This document shows positions 3,673 through 29,454 of a stretch of DNA of 64,000 nt, one piece after another. A program made the translations under genes and the position numbers. Every line of letters starts with the position of its first letter. Within the stretch, counting starts at the first letter, position 1. Location: sequence record MN445183.1; one strand, written 5' to 3'. Below the pieces are notes generated by a model that made no database searches, was not told where the DNA came from, and worked only from the letters and a program-made list of their open reading frames with translations.

Positions 3673-5784
3673 ATGGAATTGTTCGTTAATCCGGCGAGCT
3701 CGTATAAGCGAGATTTACGCATTCACCATCACTACTGCGAGAATAAAGCAAAGTCATTGTCGCTGACGTTTGGTGAACCGATGGAAAAGACGTTGGAGTT
3801 CGTACGTCGTGTTACTGCACCTGGGGCAAAACACGGGGTAGTGGATCCACGTGTTCGTATTTTAATCCGAGGTAAGAACGGTGACCGTGAACTTAAGTTT
3901 ACCACCTTTAACAGGTTCTTATCTGCGGTTGATAAACGCAAAGCAATACTGAGTCCGTCATTAACCGCGTACTTACACCCCAGTGAAAAAGTTTCACAGT
4001 ACGCCGTGTCTACTGATAACAACATCAAGGCACGTAAAGTTATCAAGAAAGAAATGTTCGTTGCGGAGCAACGTGGCGATGTTACCACGGCAACGATTAA
4101 AGACATTATGCAGACCGGGCGTAAGCTCACCAACAACGGAATGTCTGGTGGCTTCTGCACAGCCTCTACGCCGTTCTATTGTCGTTCGGCACATAGTTCG
4201 CTAACGTCATGTTGTCGTTCGGCTACGTCGTCTACAAACGCGTTTAACGAGAAGTTCCTGGCAGGTAACCGACATTACCACTCGCCAGAGATCGTGATGG
4301 AAAACATTGCGTCGATTTGTCTACACTCGAACTACGAGTTAATCGACCAAGCCATGCGCGAGTTCAATCTGCAATACCCAACGGTTGATCAGGTGATCGC
4401 ATGCATCTATCGCGGGTCTCGTCGTTATTGGTCTGACCGTAAGTACATGGCGTTGATTCATCAGCAGGTCAGCAACATGACCGAAGGTGAACGTGCAGCA
4501 TTTATGTTTACCAGTGATATGTACCATATGCGTTTGGTTAACCCAGACTTTGTGCGTCAGATGTTGGTGGACATTGCTGAGAAGACCACGGTCGGCACGA
4601 CCGAAGACGTCGCTTTAAAAGATGGCGATGCGCGTGTGCTAGCGACAATGAAATGTGCAGAAGACATCATCCGTGTTGGTACCAAGGAATCTGAGAACTC
4701 AGAAGAGATCAAAGGCCTGGTTAAAGCCAACTATAAACTGTCCGTGCAGAACATTGAGAAATACCGCAGCTACGTGCGTGCATTCTTAGTCACACCGAAC
4801 ACACCTGCATCTATTGCCATGATGCCGCACCATGTGCGTGAAACGGTGTTAGCGTCAGATACTGACTCCTCAATCTTTACCGAACAGGATTGGATTGACT
4901 GGATTCAGCCTGACTATCAATATCGTCAGGAGCGTATTCAGATCAACGCCGCGGTAACCTTCCTGGTGTCGCAGCAGGTCGTACACTTACTGGCTATTGT
5001 GTCGGGTAACATCGGTGTTGCGGAAGAACATTTGTTCCGTCTGACGATGAAGAACGAATATTACTTCGAGACCTTCGTGTTAACCAATATGGGTAAACAC
5101 TATTTTGCCACCCAGACTGCGCGTGAGGGTAACTTCTATCCTAAGCCGAAGCTGGAACTCAAAGGTGTTCACTTACGTAACTCGAACGTACCGAAAGAAA
5201 TTCGTGATCGTGGTAATATGATCATCAATGAAATCCTGGACAAGTCCAATGCCAATGAACAGTTCTCAGTTGTGGATCTGTTGAAGCGCGTGGGTGATAT
5301 TGAACGTTTCATTATTAACTCCATCAAGAACGGTGAACCGGTGTTCTTAGCGAAAGCCACCATCAAAGATAAAGATGCGTATGCAAAACCGCTGAGCAAC
5401 AACTATTATCATTACCTGATGTGGGAAGAAGTCTTTGCACAAAAATACGGTCCGGCCCCGGCACTGCAATATCTTGGCCTGAAAGCAAAATTAGGTCTGG
5501 AATCCATGACGGCGATTAACGATTGGTTGGATGAACTTGAAGACCAGGCGTTTGCCCAACGTATGCGTGACTTCTTAGCGAAGTACGGTAAGAACAAACT
5601 GTCTCAGGTAATCATGCCTGCTGATATTGTGATGACTCAGGGGTTACCAGAAGAGGTAATTCAGGGGATTAATATTCGTCAGCTGATTATGGAAAACCTG
5701 GCGATGGTGTACTCTTGCCTTGAATCACTCGGTTTGTATTTTACTAACCCGAATGCAACTCGCTTAGTATCAGACGAACACTAA
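3673..5784 (+). CDS. polB: Family B DNA polymerase, palm/C-terminal subunit of split polymerase (phiKZ gp50-like)
   Basis: LASDTDSSIF motif C, KLTNNGMSG motif B-like segment, MKNEY and KHY motifs; 703 aa. Confidence 0.9.
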   Translation: MELFVNPASSYKRDLRIHHHYCENKAKSLSLTFGEPMEKTLEFVRRVTAPGAKHGVVDPRVRILIRGKNGDRELKFTTFNRFLSAVDKRKAILSPSLTAYLHPSEKVSQYAVSTDNNIKARKVIKKEMFVAEQRGDVTTATIKDIMQTGRKLTNNGMSGGFCTASTPFYCRSAHSSLTSCCRSATSSTNAFNEKFLAGNRHYHSPEIVMENIASICLHSNYELIDQAMREFNLQYPTVDQVIACIYRGSRRYWSDRKYMALIHQQVSNMTEGERAAFMFTSDMYHMRLVNPDFVRQMLVDIAEKTTVGTTEDVALKDGDARVLATMKCAEDIIRVGTKESENSEEIKGLVKANYKLSVQNIEKYRSYVRAFLVTPNTPASIAMMPHHVRETVLASDTDSSIFTEQDWIDWIQPDYQYRQERIQINAAVTFLVSQQVVHLLAIVSGNIGVAEEHLFRLTMKNEYYFETFVLTNMGKHYFATQTAREGNFYPKPKLELKGVHLRNSNVPKEIRDRGNMIINEILDKSNANEQFSVVDLLKRVGDIERFIINSIKNGEPVFLAKATIKDKDAYAKPLSNNYYHYLMWEEVFAQKYGPAPALQYLGLKAKLGLESMTAINDWLDELEDQAFAQRMRDFLAKYGKNKLSQVIMPADIVMTQGLPEEVIQGINIRQLIMENLAMVYSCLESLGLYFTNPNATRLVSDEH

Positions 5785-7173: not shown

Positions 7174-9246
7174 ATGAATACCCCAGAAAACAAACAGCCG
7201 AATACTTCCATGGCCGATGCTCTGTCTCGTGCGACTGCCGAAGCCGCTAACAAGCAACAGCCACAACCGGGTGCTGCCCAGCCGCAGCAACCTGTTCAAC
7301 AACCCCAGCAACAAGCATATCAACCAGTAGGTGGACAAACCGTGCAACAGCCTCAGTTCCAACAACCACAGGGTTACGCAGCCCAGGCTCAGCCGCAGGG
7401 CAATCAGCAGGATCGTACTTCTAAGATCTTCGGTCTGAACAACCGTCGTGAACGTACCTTCTCTTCTCAGAACTATTCTGAGAACTTCAAGATCGCTCAC
7501 GAAGCTGTCGAAGAGTTCTGCAAACCGTACGAAGAACAGGGTTATCGTAAAACCTTCTTCATTCTGCCGCTGCAAGAAACCAACCTGCACTGCGCATCTC
7601 TGATCTACGTTCTGGCCGTAAGCAACACCACTTTCGGTGCGTTCACTTACATGCTGGAAAATACCGGTAGCCCGCTGAAACCGCTGGTTGGCAACGACCA
7701 GATGACCGGCGAACGTTACGAACTGCCGCGCATGACCGGTTCTCAGTACGACGATATCTACTGGCGTGCAGTGCAGGAAACCGTAACCCGTGTGCTGAAA
7801 CTCAGCCCGCAGGCTCAGGTTCTGGATGCTGGCGCATCCGTCGTTCACTCCGAAATGGATTGGAAAGACACCAGCGCTATCGCGAAACTGCTGAACAACG
7901 CAGAAAACGCCGTGATGACCTACGCGAACCGTCTGACTGGTTACAGCATCGAAAAACCGCTGAACCTGGTTAACGAAATCAACCCGCTGGTCGATCGTCT
8001 GTCCGCAGGCTTCAACTTCAATCCGCAGCCGCTGTTCACTGCTGACGCGCAGCCTCTGCGTAACGATGTTGAAATCAAACTGACCGTAACGTCTGAAGGC
8101 GATGTTCAGGTTCAGAACTCCGAACCGTTCACCACCGTCAACGGCTACGTTGAACTGGTATCTGCCGGTAACCAGCCGCAGATGATCCCGGGCCCTTGGG
8201 GTCAGCCGATGATGGCGCCGCAGCGTTACTACCCGCAGCTGGCTATCACCAACATCAGCTCCGGTATCTCTAACGCTGAAGGTCCTGAGTTCCAGGTACT
8301 CGGTCTGTACGTCGCAACACTGCTGCTGGAAAACAACAACTGGCAGAACGCGTTTGCTCCGCGTATGGTAAACGGCGTCGATATCAACGATATCGGTGCG
8401 CTGAACTACGAACTGCGTATGGGTGTGGATCCAGCTGACCCGAACGCACGTCCGAAGAAAATCGATACCAAAACCCACGACTTCAACAACCTGGCTCTCC
8501 AGCAGCTGTTGAATCAGGCTTGCTTCCCGAACATGTCGGTTGTTATCGACGTGGAAGAGACTGGTCTGCGTAACTGGGTGAACTCTATGTTCCTGCAAGC
8601 TGGCGGTCAGCCGGGTACCAACGCAACCAACCTGGGTAACGATGGTAAACTGGCACACGACGCGATCATCGCTGCATCGAACAACCTGACCAACGGTGAA
8701 TTCGCCAAGTTCTTCACTGACCCAACTCAGCTGATCACTATCCGTGACGGTTCTCGCATCCAGGGTGGTTACTACCTGTCTGATGCTGGCACTCGTCTGG
8801 ATATCCGTAACGTTGACCTGCTGGCAGTGCTGAACTTCCTGGGTGAATCCGATCCGCGTAAAGTGGAAGAGTGGAAAATGATCTGCTCCTCTACTTCCGG
8901 TCTGTCCGGTCCGAAACGTATCGCACTGCGTCAGCAGTTCCTCCAGACTATCCTGGGTGCGTCCTACGTTCAGAAGTGCTACTACGAGCGCGTCATGATT
9001 TCCAGCGTATATCTGGATGCTCTGCGTAAAGCTATCACCTCTGCCGGCGTTCAGGTTCGTCCGGAAAACATGAACTCTCAGTACAACCAGATGTCTTACG
9101 GTGCGCCGCTGGCTGCGCAGTACGGTTTCAATACCAACATCGGTTCGTCTCTGGTTCAAGGCGGTTACGCTCAGTTCGATCAGCAGGGTCGTGTACAGTC
9201 CTTCGGGAACTACCGCACCACTTTCGGTCACTGGTCCGGTCAGTAA
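7174..9246 (+). CDS. chmA: Chimallin, nuclear shell protein (phiKZ gp54-like)
   Basis: 690 aa with Q-rich N-terminal extension, strongly biased codon usage, located directly upstream of nvRNAP beta'-N. Confidence 0.85.
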   Translation: MNTPENKQPNTSMADALSRATAEAANKQQPQPGAAQPQQPVQQPQQQAYQPVGGQTVQQPQFQQPQGYAAQAQPQGNQQDRTSKIFGLNNRRERTFSSQNYSENFKIAHEAVEEFCKPYEEQGYRKTFFILPLQETNLHCASLIYVLAVSNTTFGAFTYMLENTGSPLKPLVGNDQMTGERYELPRMTGSQYDDIYWRAVQETVTRVLKLSPQAQVLDAGASVVHSEMDWKDTSAIAKLLNNAENAVMTYANRLTGYSIEKPLNLVNEINPLVDRLSAGFNFNPQPLFTADAQPLRNDVEIKLTVTSEGDVQVQNSEPFTTVNGYVELVSAGNQPQMIPGPWGQPMMAPQRYYPQLAITNISSGISNAEGPEFQVLGLYVATLLLENNNWQNAFAPRMVNGVDINDIGALNYELRMGVDPADPNARPKKIDTKTHDFNNLALQQLLNQACFPNMSVVIDVEETGLRNWVNSMFLQAGGQPGTNATNLGNDGKLAHDAIIAASNNLTNGEFAKFFTDPTQLITIRDGSRIQGGYYLSDAGTRLDIRNVDLLAVLNFLGESDPRKVEEWKMICSSTSGLSGPKRIALRQQFLQTILGASYVQKCYYERVMISSVYLDALRKAITSAGVQVRPENMNSQYNQMSYGAPLAAQYGFNTNIGSSLVQGGYAQFDQQGRVQSFGNYRTTFGHWSGQ

Positions 9247-9345: not shown

Positions 9346-10818
9346 ATGCAGCCAATAGCCACTGGCGGCGTATGCGCAACAGTAGCCGATCATGACAAGG
9401 CATTTCTTCAATTGCCCTATCGTCCGGTGCTGATTAATGACTTCGACCTGAGTATTGAAGCAGAGCGTGCGAAACTGAATGCACAGATGCGTGTCAGTTA
9501 CGATGCTGACATGTTCAGCGTAAAACCGCGTTGCTTCTGTGGGAAGTTAGAAGGGGGTGAAAAGGTAGGGCGGGTTTGTGGTAGTTGTGGTCATCCGGTA
9601 ACGGTGGTAACGGAAGAAGCCATCGAATCCCATCTGTGGTTTCAAACACCATTAGGCGTGGCGGGATACATCAACCCACAAATGTGGACATTGCTGTTCG
9701 AACCGTTTACTGTAAAAGGTTTCAATCCGCTAGAGTATTTTGCCGATCGTCAGTATTCGCCGGCGAAAGGAAGCGGGGATTATAAGAACAAAGAGATCTA
9801 TCAGCTTTGTAAGTCCATGGGTTTCCAACGTGGAATCAATAGCCTGATTGAGAACTTTGACTCCATCATGGGAACGTTATTAAATTCGCCGGTGGTGCGA
9901 AGCAGTAACATCTCATCAGAAAATCTGAGAAACTACGCGGCGCTGTACCAACAGTATCGTGATGTGATCTTCTGTCAGTATCTGCAATTGCCGTCTAAGC
10001 TGGTTTTCATCGTAGAGTCCAATGCTACTGGGCGTTACGCTGAGCCCGGTATGAAGCTGGCACAGGATGCGGCGTTAACCGTATGCGATGCACGTAAACA
10101 GATCGTCGATAAATACGACTTGAAGTTTAACGAAAACATTGCCATTAAGGTTGTGCGGCAGCTGGCCGATTTTTACAAGGCGCATGATAAAGATATCTTT
10201 GCCGGTAAGCCTGGTCTGATTCGTAAGAACATCGGTGGGTCACGCATGCCCTTTACGGCACGTTGTGTTATCACTTCAAAGACCGGCTACCACGACATGG
10301 ACGAAGTGGATATCCCACGTTGTATTGCTATTCCGCTGTTGCGTTTCCATATCGCGAACAAGCTGAAGGCACGGGGTTATCGTCCGCTGGATATCCTGAA
10401 CATGATGACGTCGGCAGTGAAACGACCAGATCCGGTGATTGAATCGGTACTGGATGAGTTGGAATTGGAAGAAACAGCACCGGGTGTATTGTCGCGCCTG
10501 ATGAAGATCTTCCTGTTACGTAACCCAACGTTACGTTGGTTGTCTAACCGTCGTTTCTGGGCACGCATTAACCGTAACCCGGATGAGATCACCATCAAGA
10601 TCTCTACACTGTCAATTAATCCATCCAACGCCGATTACGATGGCGATGAATTGAACCTGCTGTTCGTAACGGATGAGGTCATGTCCACGTTCGCAGAAGC
10701 GTTTGGTTCGCATAACTGCGTACTGGATATGAATAACCCGATTACGGTATCAGGTGATATTGGGTTACCGGCTACATTGATTTCCACGATTAACCGCTGG
10801 GCCTATAGCCACGATTAA
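9346..10818 (+). CDS. rpoC: Non-virion RNA polymerase beta' N-terminal subunit (phiKZ gp55-like)
   Basis: CxCG...CxxC zinc finger, LRNPTL motif, catalytic NADYDGDE. Confidence 0.92.
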   Translation: MQPIATGGVCATVADHDKAFLQLPYRPVLINDFDLSIEAERAKLNAQMRVSYDADMFSVKPRCFCGKLEGGEKVGRVCGSCGHPVTVVTEEAIESHLWFQTPLGVAGYINPQMWTLLFEPFTVKGFNPLEYFADRQYSPAKGSGDYKNKEIYQLCKSMGFQRGINSLIENFDSIMGTLLNSPVVRSSNISSENLRNYAALYQQYRDVIFCQYLQLPSKLVFIVESNATGRYAEPGMKLAQDAALTVCDARKQIVDKYDLKFNENIAIKVVRQLADFYKAHDKDIFAGKPGLIRKNIGGSRMPFTARCVITSKTGYHDMDEVDIPRCIAIPLLRFHIANKLKARGYRPLDILNMMTSAVKRPDPVIESVLDELELEETAPGVLSRLMKIFLLRNPTLRWLSNRRFWARINRNPDEITIKISTLSINPSNADYDGDELNLLFVTDEVMSTFAEAFGSHNCVLDMNNPITVSGDIGLPATLISTINRWAYSHD

Positions 10819-11550: not shown

Positions 11551-12127
11551 GCTATTGCCTTTTAAAGATAACGTCTATGTGATTTTCACACCGGATGACC
11601 TTAAAAAGGTGCGTGACATTTACGCAGCCAGTTCAGACTATCGTGGCGACATTCACAAGCTGGATAATGTTAATTCGAACTACGCGTACGTCGTGTTAAC
11701 CGAACCCGGTACAGCGTGTGCCCATTTTGTCTACTTACCTATCTGTGCGCGTCAAGGCCCAGCCACACCATGGAATCCCATGAACCCGGTGCTGGCGCGT
11801 TTTGCTACTGAGATCGTTTTGAACTGTTGTAGGGCAGTTGGGTATAACCCGATGAACGAACACACCATGTTTATTCAGCAGGTGGCGCGTGTTCAGCAAC
11901 GTATTACAGAGATCATCGCAGAGTACTTTAATGCGCGGTTGGTGATGTCATCGTGGAGCGCGTCGTATCTTGACACCAACCTTAACGAACGGCAGTGGGA
12001 GCACATCAACGCTATCAAAGCCAATACGTTAGCGGACCTGGCCAGACAGCAGTGCATGATTGAAGAAAGTGGTGTTGTTGATTTAGGTAACGATGGTCAT
12101 TGGCAATCCACAACGTACTTCTATTAA
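11537..12127 (+). CDS. Hypothetical protein
   Basis: GGAGGTG RBS; start overlaps the upstream gene (track ORF 11327 is over-extended). Confidence 0.65.
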   Translation: MKRFKLLPFKDNVYVIFTPDDLKKVRDIYAASSDYRGDIHKLDNVNSNYAYVVLTEPGTACAHFVYLPICARQGPATPWNPMNPVLARFATEIVLNCCRAVGYNPMNEHTMFIQQVARVQQRITEIIAEYFNARLVMSSWSASYLDTNLNERQWEHINAIKANTLADLARQQCMIEESGVVDLGNDGHWQSTTYFY

Positions 12128-12133
12128 TATCGC

Positions 12134-12158
12134 GCCTGGGTTCGCCCAGGCCTTTATG
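12134..12158 (+). terminator. Terminator
   Basis: GCCTGGG-TTCG-CCCAGGC then CTTTATG. Confidence 0.7.
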
Positions 12159-12178
12159 ACAGTTTTAAGGAAACCCGT

Positions 12179-12499
12179 ATGGATTTACTCAACGAAGCAT
12201 ACGAACGCGACGCAGGACGCGATACAGCTAACCTGGTACGTATAGACGGTGCTTATTTTCATGGCTTCTGTGATGAAGGCGATGATCTCGTCTACACACA
12301 AGGTCCGGTTAAGCCCATCGTGGAAGAAGGTGTTCACGATGTGACAGTTTACGGTGTCAAAGCCAAGCTGTATTACTGGAAAGCCATTGCGCCTTATTGG
12401 CCTGGCGGTAAACGGGGTCGTGGGTTAGTTGTATTAGAAGGTACCGATTCTGAAGTCGATGCCAAAGCAAAATTCAAACGTAAACAGGACGGTTTATAA
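12179..12499 (+). CDS. Hypothetical protein
   Basis: AAGGA RBS, 106 aa. Confidence 0.7.
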   Translation: MDLLNEAYERDAGRDTANLVRIDGAYFHGFCDEGDDLVYTQGPVKPIVEEGVHDVTVYGVKAKLYYWKAIAPYWPGGKRGRGLVVLEGTDSEVDAKAKFKRKQDGL

Positions 12500-13185
12500 T
12501 GTCAAGCTACGCAGCTATTAATATTCGCCTTAAGTTAAAGAAAGATGCACCAGAACATGTCCGCCAGTTCCTGGATACGTACTTCTTCAAAACCGACATT
12601 GAGAAAGCAATGGCCGATCTGGAAAATGCACCACTAACACCTCTGTGTGCATTGAAGTATTATCCGGATGGGGTAGATAACTTAACCAGCATGATTGCTC
12701 AGTGCTCATCCTTCCACAAACACTGGTGCTGGCGGGTAAAAGAAGACCACGCCGATTACACGCTGTATGAGTCCAAGGCCAGCTGCACACATAACTCCAC
12801 GGATGAAGATCTGTTGGTGTTGTTGACGTCTGGTCTGTTAGGGTATCTGGTGGTAAGCGACGGCGATGTGTTGGCTCGTGTGATCTACGAAGAATCCAGC
12901 CAAGAACGTGTGGTGATCTTCAATGCAGCTGAAAGCCATACTGAAGTCACTGACGGGTATCAGCACAAGTGGAGCGATCGCAGCGGGGATGGTTCTCACC
13001 CTCGTGAAGAGTCGCAGTATTACGATCATGTATTAACCGATGACAAAAGCGTTGATCGCTTCTCTCGTTTGGTTGCCACCAACAACGAGTTCTATCCGCC
13101 GTGGAACATCGCTGAAATCGTAGCACTGAACAATGAAAACAAAAAGGAGTGGGATGAAGAAATGTCCGCTCAGTGGTGGGGGTGA
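12499..13185 (+). CDS. Hypothetical protein
   Basis: TAATG coupling to upstream gene, 228 aa. Confidence 0.7.
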   Translation: MSSYAAINIRLKLKKDAPEHVRQFLDTYFFKTDIEKAMADLENAPLTPLCALKYYPDGVDNLTSMIAQCSSFHKHWCWRVKEDHADYTLYESKASCTHNSTDEDLLVLLTSGLLGYLVVSDGDVLARVIYEESSQERVVIFNAAESHTEVTDGYQHKWSDRSGDGSHPREESQYYDHVLTDDKSVDRFSRLVATNNEFYPPWNIAEIVALNNENKKEWDEEMSAQWWG

Positions 13186-13186
13186 T

Positions 13187-13264
13187 ATGAAAATATCCAT
13201 CTGTGCTTCGGTGGGTTTGGTGACGCTGTATTTTAGTTTGGCTTACATGTTAGGGTTTTTGTGA
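13187..13264 (+). CDS. Putative 25-aa hydrophobic peptide
   Basis: MKISICASVGLVTLYFSLAYMLGFL; ATG 1 nt after upstream stop; GGGGGTG before the start. Confidence 0.35.
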   Translation: MKISICASVGLVTLYFSLAYMLGFL

Positions 13265-13281
13265 TCCAAACGAGTACATGC

Positions 13282-13297
13282 CTACATTACCCAGGTG
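13282..13297 (+). promoter_or_regulatory. Promoter motif copy
   Basis: CTACATTACCCAGGTG. Confidence 0.65.
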
Positions 13298-13369
13298 CAG
13301 CCTAGTAAAACCGTACATTAGGCTGTGATCTTATACGAAGTGATGACGAACATACAAGGGGGGTAAATC

Positions 13370-13999
13370 GTGTTCATACCAGGGGGCTACGACTCAATTT
13401 CGGCTGTTATGGGTGGGACGAGACCTGCTGAAAGCACCATGACCTATTTTGATAACCAATATCAAAACATGATGCAAGCGGCGCAAACAATCGGTAACAG
13501 CGCGTTGTCGCAGATTTATCAAATTGCGCAGCAAACCTATCAGCACGTTATCGATACTCGTCCGTGGGAAATTGCTGAAGCATTGTCACGCCAGGTATCA
13601 CACATGTTCGACCCTAATGCCATTAAGCCGTTAACGACGTTAGCAGAGTTGCAAACGGCGAAACCGGTAATGCAGCGTTGGATTATGGCGTGTCCTGATA
13701 TCCGTGAAATGTATCACAATCAACAAATCGACGGTTACTCCGATACGTACCAGGATGCACAACCTGGCATGGTTGGAATTAACCATTACGATTGGCGTCG
13801 TGCAACGAACAGCATGGCGACGCTGAATGAAGAAACGAACGACTGGACATCAACCACCTTCACTGAAGAGTTGATTGAACACGATCGTGAATTGGCGTTC
13901 CACGAAAAATGTGACATCAAGATCACTTGGGGTCAGTGCATGAACTTCATGCAATCCCAGGCGTACGATCCAACGTCGGTGTGGAACAACAAACTGTAA
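13370..13999 (+). CDS. Conserved Chimalliviridae protein (phiKZ gp59-like, possible import factor)
   Basis: 209 aa, QRWIMACP and YDWRRATN motifs; own promoter and terminator; ortholog assignment from memory and synteny. Confidence 0.55.
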   Translation: MFIPGGYDSISAVMGGTRPAESTMTYFDNQYQNMMQAAQTIGNSALSQIYQIAQQTYQHVIDTRPWEIAEALSRQVSHMFDPNAIKPLTTLAELQTAKPVMQRWIMACPDIREMYHNQQIDGYSDTYQDAQPGMVGINHYDWRRATNSMATLNEETNDWTSTTFTEELIEHDRELAFHEKCDIKITWGQCMNFMQSQAYDPTSVWNNKL

Positions 14000-14006
14000 T
14001 AAACTG

Positions 14007-14031
14007 GCCTGGGGTAAAACCCAGGCTTTTA
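14007..14031 (+). terminator. Terminator
   Basis: GCCTGGG-GTAAAA-CCCAGGC-TTTT. Confidence 0.75.
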
Positions 14032-14052
14032 TAACGATTAGAGGTAATTGAC

Positions 14053-14322
14053 ATGTTGACTATTAATGAACTTACTGCTGAGCATAACGACCAAACAGCT
14101 ATCGGTGTTGGGCAGCCAAGCAGCTCAGATTTCCGTTTATATTTTAACGAGCCAGCGGGTAAAGTGGTTAAAATGCGTAGCCCTGATTTGCAGGTCGGTG
14201 AATATAAAGTGTTTGTTGGTCCTGCTTTTATTACGTTGACCAACACTTTAACCGGTCTGCGTTCTAACTTTACACGAGACAATGACGCCGTGTACCGTTA
14301 TCTTCCCCCGTTAGGCATTTGA
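14053..14322 (+). CDS. Hypothetical protein
   Basis: GAGGT RBS, 89 aa. Confidence 0.6.
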   Translation: MLTINELTAEHNDQTAIGVGQPSSSDFRLYFNEPAGKVVKMRSPDLQVGEYKVFVGPAFITLTNTLTGLRSNFTRDNDAVYRYLPPLGI

Positions 14323-14340
14323 TAGTTAGAGGTAATTAAG

Positions 14341-14535
14341 ATGTTTCCTGGATTCGAACAATTCGACCAGATCTTTTCTGACAAGCAAAAACAAGCAGAG
14401 CCTAAGACTCCGCAGTATTCGCCAGAGAACCCTTTATACACCTACGGTTCTGGTACCACCGTAGTGAATGGACAACAGCTATATACCGTTGGTACCGCCT
14501 CTAACCAAAAACAACATAACCTGTACTCGTATTAA
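14341..14535 (+). CDS. Hypothetical protein
   Basis: GAGGT RBS, 64 aa. Confidence 0.55.
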   Translation: MFPGFEQFDQIFSDKQKQAEPKTPQYSPENPLYTYGSGTTVVNGQQLYTVGTASNQKQHNLYSY

Positions 14536-14545
14536 GGAAACCCAT

Positions 14546-15040
14546 ATGAAAGAGAATTCCACCCATGCTGAAGAAGCTGGCGATGAAACCTACGCATTAC
14601 CAGCTGATGCGTCACGTAAGCCAATGCTCGGCGATTGGATGGCACAAGGCGACAAAGGTGTGGTTGTGCAGGTTATTCCTGATGATCACATGCCGACTAA
14701 TGTGGAAGGTAAGAAAGCAGAAGTACTGACCACACCCCGTATAACTACGCTGTACCCTGATATAAGTGAAACGGTCATTGTGGTTCACGCTAAACCAAAA
14801 TCATCTGCTCACCATCAACGTCACGGCTACAGCCGCCGTAAAGCAAAGCGTGCTTACCAGCCTCGCTACAAATACATGCTGAAAGTGTCCAAGTTCTGGG
14901 ATCCACTGATAACCCATCTTCAAACCTTCGATATCCCTACGCGTTCAGATGTCCACATGGAACAGTTCATGGGACGTATTCGTGACAAATTAGAAGTCGG
15001 TAGCTTCACGCGGCCGACTAAACCAACACCTCACGGCTAA
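14546..15040 (+). CDS. Orphan protein carrying an RNA polymerase beta-subunit fragment
   Basis: AAGGA RBS; GDWMAQGDKGVVVQVIPDDHMPTNVEGKKAEVLTTP resembles the RpoB [13 protein letters not shown]...MP...G motif. Confidence 0.65.
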   Translation: MKENSTHAEEAGDETYALPADASRKPMLGDWMAQGDKGVVVQVIPDDHMPTNVEGKKAEVLTTPRITTLYPDISETVIVVHAKPKSSAHHQRHGYSRRKAKRAYQPRYKYMLKVSKFWDPLITHLQTFDIPTRSDVHMEQFMGRIRDKLEVGSFTRPTKPTPHG

Positions 15041-15055
15041 CAAAAGGAAAGTATA

Positions 15056-15538
15056 ATGGGTCTGAATAAGAAAGCATTAAAGTTGGCGGGTTTCAAGCGT
15101 TGCGGGTTGGGTGCAAAGCATCTCTTTAAATCATATCAGATGCTGGGTAATGACCCCGGTATGGCTGCTGGTTCCATGGTGCATATAAAGGCACATCTAA
15201 TCAGCCTCAGCAAAGCGCCATGGAAGTATGGAAAGTTCCCACAAAAACCCCCCAAGTATCGCTACGAGATCGGTGAAGCGAATCTGCTAATTGGGATGGT
15301 ACCGACATCACCAAATCCGATTGTTAAAGAGGTCGACGCGGATCATGTCGATCTGACTATTGAGTTCACGGCTATTAAATCAGGCTATGAACCAATCAAC
15401 CGTGAGATGGCTGAAGGTATGTCGGCAGGTAGTTTCCCGAGCATCACACCTAAGCCTTCTGCACTGCGTTCCGTTCTGACTAATATGCATGTGGCTGCCG
15501 TCGCTACCGGGATGAAGAAAGTCTGGGGTAAATTTTAA
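15056..15538 (+). CDS. Hypothetical protein
   Basis: AAGGA RBS, 160 aa. Confidence 0.65.
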   Translation: MGLNKKALKLAGFKRCGLGAKHLFKSYQMLGNDPGMAAGSMVHIKAHLISLSKAPWKYGKFPQKPPKYRYEIGEANLLIGMVPTSPNPIVKEVDADHVDLTIEFTAIKSGYEPINREMAEGMSAGSFPSITPKPSALRSVLTNMHVAAVATGMKKVWGKF

Positions 15539-15873
15539 TGTCGGTACCGTTTAATGCTGGTCATTATAAAAGAAAGGGCCGTTTGCGCAATGACCCTTTG
15601 TATCACGGCGATCAGTGTGAGTTGTTGTATCATCAGATCGCTGCGCTTAAGATCCAGTGCAAACTGTACGCTGATCTGCTAAAGGATGATAAGTCTAAAG
15701 GCAATCGTGACATGTTCAACTGGTTAGTCGAACAGGTCCGTATCTTTAAAGTGCGTTATGAGTACGCGTACTTATTGTCAGCTGCACCGGATAAGCGCGG
15801 TAATGAAAAGTCATACCAGTACCGTGTTAATAGTCTGGCCAAACAACTGGGTATTAGAAATGGCAATGAGTAA
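15538..15873 (+). CDS. Hypothetical protein
   Basis: TAATG coupling, 111 aa. Confidence 0.6.
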   Translation: MSVPFNAGHYKRKGRLRNDPLYHGDQCELLYHQIAALKIQCKLYADLLKDDKSKGNRDMFNWLVEQVRIFKVRYEYAYLLSAAPDKRGNEKSYQYRVNSLAKQLGIRNGNE

Positions 15874-16069
15874 GCGTGCATTAATCAAGCAGTCAAAGTC
15901 GTTCTTTCGTCGCCGTTCTATTAAGCTGAACATAACGGTGGTGGACTTAGCTGGCGTAATGGCGATGCCTGGCAAAGTAAGTCGTAAACCCATTGATGGC
16001 AAATACCACTACTACCGTATTGAACCACGGGAGTCTGGCATTGGCAAACTAATGGAAGACGTGTTGTAA
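15860..16069 (+). CDS. Small basic hypothetical protein
   Basis: ATG overlaps upstream gene; ends just before a terminator. Confidence 0.5.
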   Translation: MAMSKRALIKQSKSFFRRRSIKLNITVVDLAGVMAMPGKVSRKPIDGKYHYYRIEPRESGIGKLMEDVL

Positions 16070-16072
16070 TCC

Positions 16073-16102
16073 AGGTAGGGGGTAACACCCCTACCTTTAT
16101 GC
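16073..16102 (+). terminator. Terminator
   Basis: AGGTAGGGG-GTAACA-CCCCTACCT then TTATGC. Confidence 0.8.
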
Positions 16103-16152
16103 TGATCAGTTCTTTTATTTTTTGTTTATTTAAGCTGTAGATCTTTTCAGAC

Positions 16153-16168
16153 CTACATTACTGCGGTG
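16153..16168 (+). promoter_or_regulatory. Promoter motif copy
   Basis: CTACATTACTGCGGTG. Confidence 0.65.
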
Positions 16169-16203
16169 ATGAAACAATTTAAACATTACTTGTGAGGTGT
16201 GTT

Positions 16204-16737
16204 ATGAACGATTTAAAATTCCACATTGAAAACATCAAGCGGTCTATTGATGTCCTTGCCAACGAACAGAACCAAAAAGAAACTGCATTAGCCATTACGG
16301 AGTTGATGGAAGACCCCAACTTCCAAATACTGTTTAACCTTAAACTCCAACGTAAAGTTATTCACGAACGTGAACTGTCAGAGCTACTTGGGTTGAAACG
16401 CGGTTCTATTGATATTGCTGATCAAATCTTTCAGTTCAACCATGACTGGAACTTTACCAAGGATGGTAACTTTATGGTTAGATCGCAAGAACCTGATCGC
16501 ACCAGAATGTTCTTTCTCCCTTATACCGACACCTTTGTCTTTCGTGTTGTCGAAGCTGATGACGATCAAACTGCATTCAAAGGCGTTAACAACTTCACTA
16601 TTGGGTTCCTTAAACCCGGTGATGACACACTTTATAAAGTCCAGTTTGTCACCCATTTGCACTTTGCCAGTCACGAGATGGTGACTGCACTTAAAGCATT
16701 GGCGCCGGACTTCACGGTGTTCGTAACAAAAATGTAA
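16204..16737 (+). CDS. Hypothetical protein
   Basis: GAGGTG RBS; downstream of promoter motif. Confidence 0.65.
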   Translation: MNDLKFHIENIKRSIDVLANEQNQKETALAITELMEDPNFQILFNLKLQRKVIHERELSELLGLKRGSIDIADQIFQFNHDWNFTKDGNFMVRSQEPDRTRMFFLPYTDTFVFRVVEADDDQTAFKGVNNFTIGFLKPGDDTLYKVQFVTHLHFASHEMVTALKALAPDFTVFVTKM

Positions 16738-16763
16738 TTTTTAAGTTCCAGATTTTTTCAAGT

Positions 16764-16779
16764 CTATATAACTGAGGTG
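16764..16779 (+). promoter_or_regulatory. Promoter motif variant
   Basis: CTATATAACTGAGGTG preceded by ATTTTTT. Confidence 0.55.
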
Positions 16780-16832
16780 AATGAGAACAATAAAGAATGT
16801 TCTCCCTATCCGCAACCTGTGAGGATCTACCC

Positions 16833-17042
16833 ATGTCTAAAGCTAAACTCATTACCGCCGTTGTTTCCCTGGCCGTTATTGGCGCTGCGTATTACAAAGG
16901 CCGTCAGCTGAAAGCCAAGATCATCGAAGCGATGAATGAAATGGAAGCCAAGGCTGAAGAAGCCCCGATTGTTGAAGCCGCGAAAGACGTAAAAGCAGAT
17001 GACGGTAAAGTCGATACGCTGAACGCTTCTTCCGCAGTTTAA
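16833..17042 (+). CDS. Small single-pass membrane protein
   Basis: GAGGA RBS; LITAVVSLAVIGAAYY hydrophobic segment. Confidence 0.65.
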   Translation: MSKAKLITAVVSLAVIGAAYYKGRQLKAKIIEAMNEMEAKAEEAPIVEAAKDVKADDGKVDTLNASSAV

Positions 17043-27339: not shown

Positions 27340-29454
27340 ATGACTACCCCTGTTATTGAAGCGAGTGAACTATCTGCGGACATTCTGTCCTCGGTGCTTT
27401 CACTTAATCCAACAGTCCACGGTGACTCTTCACCTCGTTCAGCAATGTTTGGCGGTCATGCCGGACAAGCGGTGACGATTGAAGGTTCTACGGTACGGAT
27501 GTTAAAAACCGGTCAAGAGTATGAGTACGCAAAGGGGACATTTAAAATAGAAGCACCGTGTGACATGCTGGTCATTGATGTGATCCAGCGTTTCACTGAA
27601 ACCTGGGGTCAGGGCGGTATCCGCATGAACCCTGAAACGTATGTGGTTTACGAACGCATCTCAGGAAAAACAACGGCGTTAGAACAAGCTTCAAACGTGT
27701 TCGGTATTCTGCGGATTCCAGCTTATCATACTCGCAACCACGCGCTGGGTTTCAAGTATGTTCAAGATGTGAAGAACCAGCAGAAATTGGTTCCGAACAA
27801 CATAGTAAAGAAAGGCACCGTGTTTGCGTACAGTCCGAACTTAACGCCGGGTGGCGATTATAAATACGGACGTGAAACGAACGTGGCGTTCATGTCTCTT
27901 CCGGAAGTAGAACAGGATGGGATGGTAGCAACCGAGTCGTTTGCCAACGCCATGGCGTGTACGAAAATTGAAAGTCGTATTGCACAATGGGGTGAAAACA
28001 AAATCCTGTTGAACCTGTATGGCGACGCAACCCACTATAAACCGTTCCCGGATATCGGCGAGAAGATTCGTGATGATGGGTTATTGTTTGCGGTTCGCTC
28101 TATTGAGCCTGGTGTTGGTATCGTTAACCTGACACCGAAAGCGCTGATGGAATTGGATCCCACATTCGATGTCGGTAAGTATGGCGAGCCAGGTGCCACG
28201 GTGATTAACATTGCCGTGAAATCTGACCGCATGCGCACAGGTCGTTCAGAAGTACAGTTCTATGATAAACAGGCAGACCGTTATGAGCGAGCAGCGCGTT
28301 CGTTCTCATCACGTTTGCGTGAAAACTACGAGCGTTTATTGCGTTCGCACCCAACTACGCTGCTGTTAGAAGATGAGCTGAACCGCATGGTTACGGATGC
28401 TATTTCCGATACCGGTGGTCTGGATCGTCGTATGAACAGCCAGGGTGAAGTTATTAGCATGGACAAAGGCGCTCAGATTTACAATAAAGTGCCAATTGGA
28501 GACTGGCGTGCTGAAATCACTTTTGTGAAGCGCCTGGAAGCTGGGGTTCGTTTTAAGATTACGGACACCCATGGCGGTAAAGGCGTTATCGTTAAGGTGA
28601 TTCCTGATGAAGATGCACCTATCGACGAATTCGGTAACCGTGCAGACGTCATCATGGATAACTGTTCTATTACCAAACGTATGAACCTGGGTAAACCAGC
28701 AGAGCAGTACATTAACGGTGCTTCTGTGTATGCGACAAAAGTTGCCCGTTCGTTGCGTGATGCTGGTGATATGGACGGCGCTTGGAATCATCTGATGAGT
28801 TACTACGAAGCCGCGGCTTACGAGCAATACGACATGATGATTAATAACCAGGTGTACGCAACGAAAGTGAACCGTGATTTCCACGTTAACTGGGTGTGTG
28901 AGCACGGCGTTGAGTTGTTCTGTCCGACGGATCGCAAATACTTTGGTGCAGAACAATGCCGACGTATCATGCGTAAGCATGACTTCCCTACCACACGTGT
29001 GCGTTATCGTGCACCGAACGGTGAGCTGGTTTGGACGAAAGATCCGGTGGTGATTGCGCCGATCTACATCATCCTGCTGGAGAAAATGGGCGAGTACTGG
29101 GCGTCGTGTGCAATTCCTAAACTCACCCATTTCGGTACACTGTCCACGTTAACACAAGTAGACAAGTACTCGTTGCCATGGCGTAACACGCCAACACGTT
29201 TTACTGGTGAATCTGAAATCCGTCTGTTCCTGGCAGCGTGTGGTGGTTGGTTTACTAACCGTCTGCTGTCGTTTGCGAACACACCAACCATGCAGAAAGC
29301 GGCAGTGGTTAAGATTCTCCAGGCGAAGAACCCAATGAAGATTCCGAGTATGATTGATGAAAAAGCTACCCCGTTAGGTCGTGGGCGTCCGCTTCAGATG
29401 TACAAACATATTCAGGCGTGTCGTGGGATTCATTTAGAACGTGCAGCAGCGTAA
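27340..29454 (+). CDS. rpoB: Non-virion RNA polymerase beta C-terminal subunit (phiKZ gp71-73-like), uninterrupted
   Basis: SPRSAMF, EQDGMV, KITDTHGGKGVI, KRMNLG and RFTGESE motifs. Confidence 0.92.
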   Translation: MTTPVIEASELSADILSSVLSLNPTVHGDSSPRSAMFGGHAGQAVTIEGSTVRMLKTGQEYEYAKGTFKIEAPCDMLVIDVIQRFTETWGQGGIRMNPETYVVYERISGKTTALEQASNVFGILRIPAYHTRNHALGFKYVQDVKNQQKLVPNNIVKKGTVFAYSPNLTPGGDYKYGRETNVAFMSLPEVEQDGMVATESFANAMACTKIESRIAQWGENKILLNLYGDATHYKPFPDIGEKIRDDGLLFAVRSIEPGVGIVNLTPKALMELDPTFDVGKYGEPGATVINIAVKSDRMRTGRSEVQFYDKQADRYERAARSFSSRLRENYERLLRSHPTTLLLEDELNRMVTDAISDTGGLDRRMNSQGEVISMDKGAQIYNKVPIGDWRAEITFVKRLEAGVRFKITDTHGGKGVIVKVIPDEDAPIDEFGNRADVIMDNCSITKRMNLGKPAEQYINGASVYATKVARSLRDAGDMDGAWNHLMSYYEAAAYEQYDMMINNQVYATKVNRDFHVNWVCEHGVELFCPTDRKYFGAEQCRRIMRKHDFPTTRVRYRAPNGELVWTKDPVVIAPIYIILLEKMGEYWASCAIPKLTHFGTLSTLTQVDKYSLPWRNTPTRFTGESEIRLFLAACGGWFTNRLLSFANTPTMQKAAVVKILQAKNPMKIPSMIDEKATPLGRGRPLQMYKHIQACRGIHLERAAA

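Follow-up and report, generated by a model that had tools for sequence, protein, structure and literature searches.

Small phage proteins that bind and modulate the multisubunit RNA polymerase (RNAP) of the host include T7 Gp2, T4 AsiA, Xp10 p7 and P23-45 gp39 and gp76. To our knowledge, no RNAP subunit has contributed a fragment to any of these proteins. In the jumbo phage phiKZ a small factor, Imp7 (gp166), is required for the import of the non-virion RNAP (nvRNAP) (bioRxiv 10.64898/2026.09.21.753271). Here we describe gp239, a hypothetical protein of 164 aa with a pI of 9.4 (QKE54555.1), which is encoded at 14546..15040 on the plus strand of the window, the 64,000-nucleotide stretch of DNA that was analysed. 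This stretch is identical to Salmonella phage vB_SalM_SA002 (MN445183.1, 288 kb), and a window coordinate equals the coordinate of the record minus 186000. To judge from its sequence, the core of gp239 is an exapted fragment of about 35 aa from the catalytic barrel of an RNAP beta subunit of jumbo-phage type, located beside an invariant basic stretch. We tentatively read gp239 as a mimic of this beta element that may modulate the assembly or the activity of a phage-type multisubunit RNAP, either that of SA002 itself or that of a rival; this reading is possible and far from certain.

Residues ~29-63 of gp239 resemble the catalytic 'two-lysine' loop of beta together with the next strand-loop-strand of its double-psi beta-barrel. 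The core strand-loop-strand (GDKGVVVQVIPDDHMPTNVEGKKAEVLTT) is encoded at 14648..14734 on the plus strand and is equivalent to residues 1071-1099 of Escherichia coli RpoB and to residues 412-440 of the nvRNAP beta of SA002, where the matching segment (GGKGVIVKVIPDEDAPIDEFGNRADVIMD) is encoded at 28573..28659 on the same strand. An earlier reading of this DNA, made without database searches and called here the sequence-only reading, had aligned the residues encoded at 14630-14737 by eye with bacterial RpoB and with the phage's own nvRNAP beta, and both likenesses stand. BLASTP reproduces the first alignment exactly, with 13 of 38 positions identical to E. coli RpoB 1063-1100, one gap of two residues and an E value of 8e-4 (single comparison). 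For the own nvRNAP beta, BLASTP gives 13 identities in 27 positions, and hhalign of the gp239 family against an alignment of this beta and its relatives gives a probability of 92.6% and an E value of 4.7e-7 over 31 columns.

The same segment is found by independent profiles. PHROG 3295 ('RNA polymerase beta subunit') matches gp239 with an E value of 3.7e-7, 31 of its 698 positions being covered, and matches 20 of the 23 family members. Compared with the PDB, the family profile finds the nvRNAP beta of phiKZ (7ogp_C, E 0.0026) and that of AR9 (E 0.013) and, besides these two, just one marginal unrelated chain. The Pfam profile RNA_pol_Rpb2_6 matches gp239 with an E value of 0.006 and 16.1 bits, which is below the curated cut-off of 23.4, and the match is restricted to positions 208-260 of 373. 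A tblastn search with gp239 against 50,697 phage records returned three family genes, and all 23 other records are jumbo-phage RNAP beta genes matched at the same site; the best of these matches are from RSL2 and RSF1 (56% over 32 aa), followed by RisingSun, AR9, PBS1 and others.

On these comparisons the homology of the piece to RNAP beta is well beyond chance. The piece is also nearer to the nvRNAP beta of jumbo phages than to the RpoB of the host, because hhalign of the family gives an E value of 4.7e-7 in the first case and of 0.021 (probability 2%) with E. coli RpoB. The copy is of the nvRNAP type of jumbo phages and not of the host type, and the best tblastn matches (beta genes of RSL2, RisingSun and AR9) agree with this. 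The description of gp239 as an otherwise unrelated small protein that contains a beta piece is upheld as well. Beyond the piece there is nothing colinear with beta: for regions F, G and I, which are colinear around the catalytic loop, neither the alternative alignments of hhalign nor a colinear-chain test, in which shuffled queries were used and RpoB and the own beta did no better than control proteins, detected anything specific in gp239. Measured against an RNA polymerase beta subunit, gp239 has neither a whole-domain match above the curated threshold nor both catalytic lysines (E. coli K1065 and K1073).

The best-conserved core extends from K37-G38-V39, which holds the lysine of the G-x-K-G motif (E. 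coli K1073), to about L61, and this second catalytic lysine (K37) is invariant across the family. Further upstream, comparison with the beta subunits of AR9, RSL2, SA002 and E. coli shows that the beta register G-[DSN]-K-x-x-G…G-x-K-G is kept in SA002 (GDWMAQ--GDKG), in P0005 (GDHMSQSNATKG, which aligns ungapped to RpoB) and in P0019 (GAYADSYGGKG), the first catalytic lysine being replaced by W, H or Y in these three proteins; P0003 is likewise cited among the relatives that keep the register of the two-lysine loop with the first lysine changed. Because relatives retain the register of the beta loop, it was reasonable to propose that the conserved Lys of SA002 had been replaced by Trp and an RH pair deleted. 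In most other members the upstream part of the loop is swapped for an acidic module (…DETYALPAD directly followed by KGV…). The 'GDWMAQ' part, which represents the beta register G-D-K-M-A-G with Trp at the first catalytic lysine, is the weaker portion of the match and sits in a 45-nt indel module (…ASRKPMLGDWMAQG…; 14605..14649, plus strand) that is present in SA002 and P0003 and missing from the closest relative, contig L036, by blastn.

The sequence-only reading regarded gp239 as an orphan; it belongs to a family of about 25 syntenic members, which originate from the Erwinia phages pEa_SNUABM_37 and pEa_SNUABM_48 and from metagenomes. A word search returned 14 homologues of 200-270 aa, including gp263 of pEa_SNUABM_37, and more distant members (P0018-P0022, P0026 and P0028) came from a profile search. 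With only 16 matches at E ≤ 1e-3 among 1.84 billion representatives in that search, the family is small and clade-restricted. The family gene follows homologues of gp236-gp238 and precedes a homologue of gp240 in every contig examined. At this syntenic position gp239 shows the two elements that define the family, KGV..IPDD..P.D..G.KAE and then KPK…QR.GYSRRKAKR.YQ. The identity of the family gene is 36-44%, versus 54-95% for most neighbours (gp240 is down to 42% once), which places gp239 by sequence divergence among the most diverged genes of its block. P0025, a truncated cluster member of 51 aa, is an assembly fragment.

Invariant columns are K37, G38, V39, P45, D46, D47 and P50 in the piece, so that the homologues do conserve the segment, and K83, P84, K85, Q91, R92, G94-K101 and A103 in the basic patch. 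The latter, a Lys/Arg-rich stretch (KPK…HQRHGYSRRKAKRAYQPRYKYMLK; 14792..14896, plus strand) with a net charge of ~+11 and a helix predicted at low confidence, had been pointed out in the flanks by the sequence-only reading and is conserved more strongly than any other part of the family; in the charge profile the +11 stretch comprises residues 81-120. Nei-Gojobori dN/dS values (nonsynonymous to synonymous substitution rates) are 0.12-0.33 in most pairs, alike for the beta piece and for the remainder of the gene. The SA002 allele is found without gaps in contigs of two other sequencing runs, one of which may be the source sample. With these dN/dS values, the invariance of the piece and the basic patch and the same allele in other samples, the suggestion that the fragment might simply be recombination debris is not supported, and gp239 is a real, constrained and fast-evolving accessory gene. 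The gp239 gene lies outside the coverage of the metatranscriptome contigs, which speaks neither way on its expression.

Most family members (P0007, P0012, P0022, P0028 and others) possess a conserved acidic loop of the pattern D-[FYHL]-D-x-[DN] located 10-15 residues after the piece, which is not present in SA002. Across the complete genome of SA002, the stricter pattern D[FYLH]DG[DN] is confined to the two genuine beta' subunits.

The beta piece is also found in small proteins outside the family. P0031 is an acidic protein of 311 aa (pI 5.3) known from 15 contigs, including a complete, uncultured jumbo phage of 229 kb (IMG/VR UViG_3300028676_000005). It has only the piece in common with the gp239 family (hhalign E 3.6e-9, 28 columns), and it matches PHROG 3295 with an E value of 6.5e-14 over 42 residues. 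In this segment 19 of 42 residues (45%) are identical to the beta of the same phage. Where PDEDMP.D..GNRAD is the canonical loop, the own nvRNAP beta of the 229-kb phage (L045:1501-3576, minus strand) shows an unusual, diverged sequence, IIPQWMAPRAPDGTYAD, and P0031 retains the canonical loop, VIPDDQMPLDKEGNRAE (PDDQMP…GNRAE). In P0031 the first lysine is kept and Arg stands in place of the second. P0029 (213 aa) carries the same beta piece in a further context (hhalign E 3.9e-10). A word search limited to the piece of P0031 returned its own family only. Like gp239, P0031 and P0029 are small proteins of unassigned function with the same beta piece in blocks of small genes; unlike members of the gp239 family, they show no similarity to gp239 beyond the piece, and P0031 is acidic and free of a Lys/Arg patch. 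Its repeated placement in small proteins, and the canonical loop of P0031 beside a diverged own beta, speak for selection that acts on this particular element. Weak matches on the same beta-like segment (E 0.007-0.19) were obtained for the PHROGs 33452, 26593, 10259 and 24893, all of unknown function, which may be further small phage proteins with the element.

A piece of a different polymerase has been captured within the family as well. Between two stretches of family sequence, P0019 harbours 36 aa (108 nt, in frame) from the divergent family B DNA polymerase (L039:1020-1128, ENA scaffold); this insertion matches the window at ~5014-5121. The piece is recognized by Pfam PF20286 with an E value of 2e-10, above the cut-off, and is identical to the SA002 polymerase at 27 of 36 aa (75%) and at ~78% of the nucleotides, the identity falling sharply outside. 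P0019 is known from a single metagenomic scaffold of 1.35 kb; a double-junction assembly chimera is unlikely.

If gp239 is a mimic, its action may be pictured as follows. The captured piece of beta has lost the first catalytic lysine, has kept the second and is joined to the Lys/Arg-rich stretch. The piece could dock as a peptide mimic on the catalytic barrel of beta', on nucleic acid at the active centre or on a factor that recognises unassembled beta, while the basic stretch would bind nucleic acid. In this way gp239 might modulate the assembly or the activity of the phage-type RNAP of its own phage or of a co-infecting rival. As it retains residues conserved in beta and turns up in small proteins that are otherwise unrelated, the element most likely acts here as it does in RNAP. 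A broader proposal goes well beyond gp239 and seems quite unlikely: jumbo phages would repeatedly build small, largely unstructured peptide decoys from short active-centre pieces of their own polymerases (so far the two-lysine loop of nvRNAP beta in at least two unrelated families and the DNA-polymerase piece in one member), to poison or to license the assembly of split multisubunit polymerases such as those of a co-infecting rival, and the hypervariable, shuffling locus would be the footprint of an arms race between phages.

Several observations weigh against the mimic. In the pair SA002-L036 the dN/dS of the piece is 0.76 over 28 codons, that of the remaining gene being 0.19. Both SA002 and its closest relative show drift in the second half of the piece (D to N, N to K) and are devoid of the N-terminal module and of the acidic DxDxD-like loop found in most members; given the drift and the lost modules, the SA002 copy could be a weakened version. 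AlphaFold2 with the family alignment delivered no confident fold (pLDDT, a per-residue confidence score, of 48.5 for P0007 and 52.2 for P0001), and the models agree solely in a helix that spans the basic stretch (residues 97-115, pLDDT ~55-60). The ESM Atlas model is poor as well (pLDDT 0.39). The complex prediction for the N-terminal nvRNAP beta' subunit with gp239 gave no answer (score 0.00), a result that counts neither for nor against binding. Finally, the conservation of the piece could reflect the structural needs of the hairpin itself and not a shared partner.

The main alternative is that the piece is a neutral structural element and that gp239 is an accessory factor, for example a nucleic-acid-binding one, which acts via its basic patch and is unrelated to RNAP. 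The high conservation of the patch, the pI of 9.4 and the +11 stretch would suit such a factor, as would the end of colinear beta similarity at the borders of the piece, the failure to obtain a predicted interaction and the unassigned functions of the neighbouring genes. However, the invariant residues of the piece are those conserved across RNAP betas, and the same piece alone is present in the unrelated P0031 family. We consider this alternative unlikely, and continue to prefer the mimic in a tentative way.

The locus is plastic and modular, which bears on the next alternative. The flanks of L036 are 92% identical to SA002 at the nucleotide level. Compared with L036 by blastn, SA002 shows a 195-nt in-frame deletion with an 8-nt junction overlap, that is, microhomology (14558..14565, plus strand, from the coordinates of the blastn blocks), the 45-nt insertion described above and a 471-nt deletion (junction at 15036..15038, plus strand), with which the KGDLNG tail of the family and a whole neighbour gene of 162 aa, present in L036 and pEa_SNUABM_37, are gone. 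It is thus conceivable that the SA002 copy is a decaying remnant of a family that is functional elsewhere, and the absence of the DxDxD-like loop and of the N-terminal module and the elevated dN/dS of the piece versus L036 point in the same direction. Nevertheless, all changes are in frame, the open reading frame and its Shine-Dalgarno sequence (AAGGA, 14534-14538, plus strand, 7 nt upstream) are intact, the rest of the gene has the low dN/dS given above, and other samples contain an identical allele, which leaves decay with a small chance only.

Further rearrangements are seen across the family. The acidic module, AEEAGDETYALPAD in SA002 (14567..14608, plus strand; alignments A1 and A2), is mobile: it precedes the piece in most members but follows it in P0021 and P0022, and in P0011 and P0018 it sits close to the N-terminus. 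The C-terminal half of the family consists of two unrelated cassettes; the variant region of gp239 (SKFWDPLITHLQTFDIPTRSDVHMEQFMGR…PTKPTPHG; 14897..15037, plus strand) is common only to the SA002 subgroup, and the other members carry a different cassette. P0020 (244 aa, metagenomic) is a natural fusion to which the family protein contributes its N-terminal two thirds and the gp240-like neighbour its C-terminal ~60 aa. The modules of the family are shuffled by microhomology indels, and the locus is an indel hotspot. A 'GRGYLLLLDENGNPV' module of some relatives matches PHROG 3004, a virion protein of 1167 aa, with an E value of 3.5e-4 and 8 of 18 identical positions, and this match was judged unconvincing. 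The gene directly downstream of the family gene (MVKRLTANG…, 162-171 aa; L036:3264-3752 and L002:11014-11529) is cleanly missing in SA002 (site at window ~15037), L009 and L038 and has no Pfam or PHROG match; its presence/absence polymorphism is typical of mobile or dispensable cassettes.

The sequence-only reading had offered a different role: gp239 might be a decoy for host RNAP or might inhibit its assembly; in the case of SA002 this would be the Salmonella enzyme, with RpoB as the model. Apart from the BLASTP alignment to E. coli RpoB 1063-1100 with its E value of 8e-4, this version draws on the motif 'GD-x-MA', which is nearer to the cellular GDKMAG than to the phage FKITDTHG, and on the independence of phiKZ-like phages from host RNAP (PMC7598289, PMC7618050). 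It is nonetheless improbable, as the core is clearly nearer to jumbo-phage nvRNAP beta, and as host RNAP is pre-assembled at infection, so that a barrel fragment would hardly compete with a folded subunit. SA002 is a nucleus-forming, phiKZ-like jumbo phage, because a homologue of chimallin, the shell protein of the phage nucleus, is encoded in the window (7174-9246, plus strand, annotated as hypothetical).

By analogy, the piece might also be a recognition tag taken from cargo of the phage nucleus, which uses or competes for an import or assembly-licensing pathway. SA002 encodes chimallin, both captured pieces derive from nuclear cargo (nvRNAP and DNA polymerase), and the import of phiKZ nvRNAP needs subunit interactions in addition to the small, clade-restricted Imp7 (bioRxiv 10.64898/2026.09.21.753271). 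Against this stand the purely analogical nature of the argument and the beta loop itself, to which no import signal has been mapped and which lies deep within the active centre once the enzyme is assembled; such a tag is very improbable. An equally slim chance is given to a convergent or chance beta-hairpin with a PDD…P…G motif. Here the match of only ~30 residues, the Pfam score below the cut-off and the repetitive unrelated proteins that match the profile via 'VIPDD' have to be set against the agreement of independent statistics, the 23 of 23 non-family tblastn records that are beta genes matched at the same site, and, in several members, a register that also takes in the two-lysine loop upstream.

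The family was also considered as a reduced 'mini' beta or two-barrel polymerase on the basis of motifs seen by eye (SPRxxMxG, ED, GxKG, YMLK, KSD and DxDxD), an idea that was rejected, as these motifs are without statistical support; in the homologues, ADFDMD, ADYDGN and DLDGD recall NADFDGD of beta', SPRxxMxG recalls the N-terminus of phage beta and YKYMLKV recalls YMYMLKL of RpoB. A mini-polymerase relative is scarcely credible: apart from these likenesses, it could only invoke the nearest named ESM cluster, a viral RNA-dependent RNA polymerase domain (two-barrel) family with a score of 0.82, which the tool calls often chance, whereas hhalign alternative alignments found nothing beyond the piece, a hidden Markov model search of the window with the family profile gave no match to beta', the colinear-chain test was negative, the AlphaFold2 models contain no barrel and SA002 has no DxDxD-like loop. 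No internal repeat was found.

As a possible origin of the fragment, capture of the flank of a 3' exon by intron homing was examined. The nvRNAP beta gene of the phiKZ group is split exactly at HGG^KGV by a group I intron that carries an HNH gene (gp72) (L035:4440-4460 and 5670-5700, phiKZ AF399011). This site marks the 5' boundary of the most strongly conserved stretch of the piece, and all tblastn matches in records of the phiKZ group begin at the KGV residue after it. Jumbo phages that infect the same cell compete by way of intron endonucleases that target RNAP genes (PMC11620839). An intron-homing origin is left only as a weak possibility, because the homology runs upstream of HGG^KGV in several members and in P0031, because the locus contains no nuclease or intron remnant, and because none of ~60 records sampled from 310 matching phage records has an interruption at the site of the DNA-polymerase piece of P0019. 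Neither Pfam nor PHROG detected a nuclease domain (HNH, GIY-YIG or LAGLIDADG) in any family member, phiKZ gp72 serving as positive control with matches to HNH_3 and NUMOD4, and Rfam gave no match over window positions 12000-17000. In the library of literature that was searched, and for that library only, SA002 is not mentioned and no jumbo-phage protein with an RNAP fragment is described.

The gp239 gene is located among the genes for chimallin, DNA polymerase and nvRNAP subunits. The full-length divergent family B DNA polymerase is encoded at 3673-5784 on the plus strand (PF20286, E 3e-263) and is annotated as hypothetical. The gene at 9346..10818, 3.7 kb upstream of gp239 on the same plus strand, is mislabelled in GenBank as 'RNA polymerase beta subunit'; because it contains the catalytic loop NADYDGD and matches Pfam RNA_pol_Rpb1_2, it is the N-terminal subunit of nvRNAP beta', the natural docking partner for the catalytic barrel of beta. 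The C-terminal subunit of nvRNAP beta is intact (27340-29454, plus strand), and the virion RNAP genes of SA002 are located outside the window. For the neighbour genes of gp239, Pfam and PHROGs were uninformative, and all their functions are unassigned by these searches.

Phage gene fragments are commonly written off as debris. Here, ~35 residues of RNAP, taken from its best-conserved region, are kept under purifying selection in a real protein family and recur independently in a second one. nvRNAPs are essential for nucleus-forming jumbo phages and are already battlegrounds between co-infecting phages (PMC11620839). If gp239 is indeed a mimic, it would represent a new way to regulate or sabotage the split, sigma-less nvRNAPs of these phages, and K37/G38, P45-D47 and the basic patch would provide an easily mutated handle on nvRNAP assembly or import. 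If the piece is only structural, gp239 would be a modest curiosity that tells something about accessory genes assembled from scraps.

Among described proteins, the C-terminal half of jumbo-phage nvRNAP beta (phiKZ gp71-73, AR9 gp089) shares with gp239 the strand-loop-strand after the G-x-K-G lysine, with up to 56% identity (RSL2). It differs in that only ~35 of its ~700 residues are in common with gp239, which has no barrel, flap or clamp and is not a polymerase subunit. Imp7 resembles gp239 as a small, clade-restricted protein with a structure prediction of low confidence, and it is functionally tied to nvRNAP; in contrast to gp239, no RNAP fragment has been reported in Imp7, and the two are likened by description, as a lead only. 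With Gp2, AsiA, p7 and gp39/gp76, in a comparison drawn from general knowledge, gp239 shares the small size, the phage origin, the restriction to a clade and a proposed action on a multisubunit RNAP; no relation to them in sequence or fold emerged, and it differs from them in that its piece resembles the RNAP of a phage, whereas their target is that of the host.

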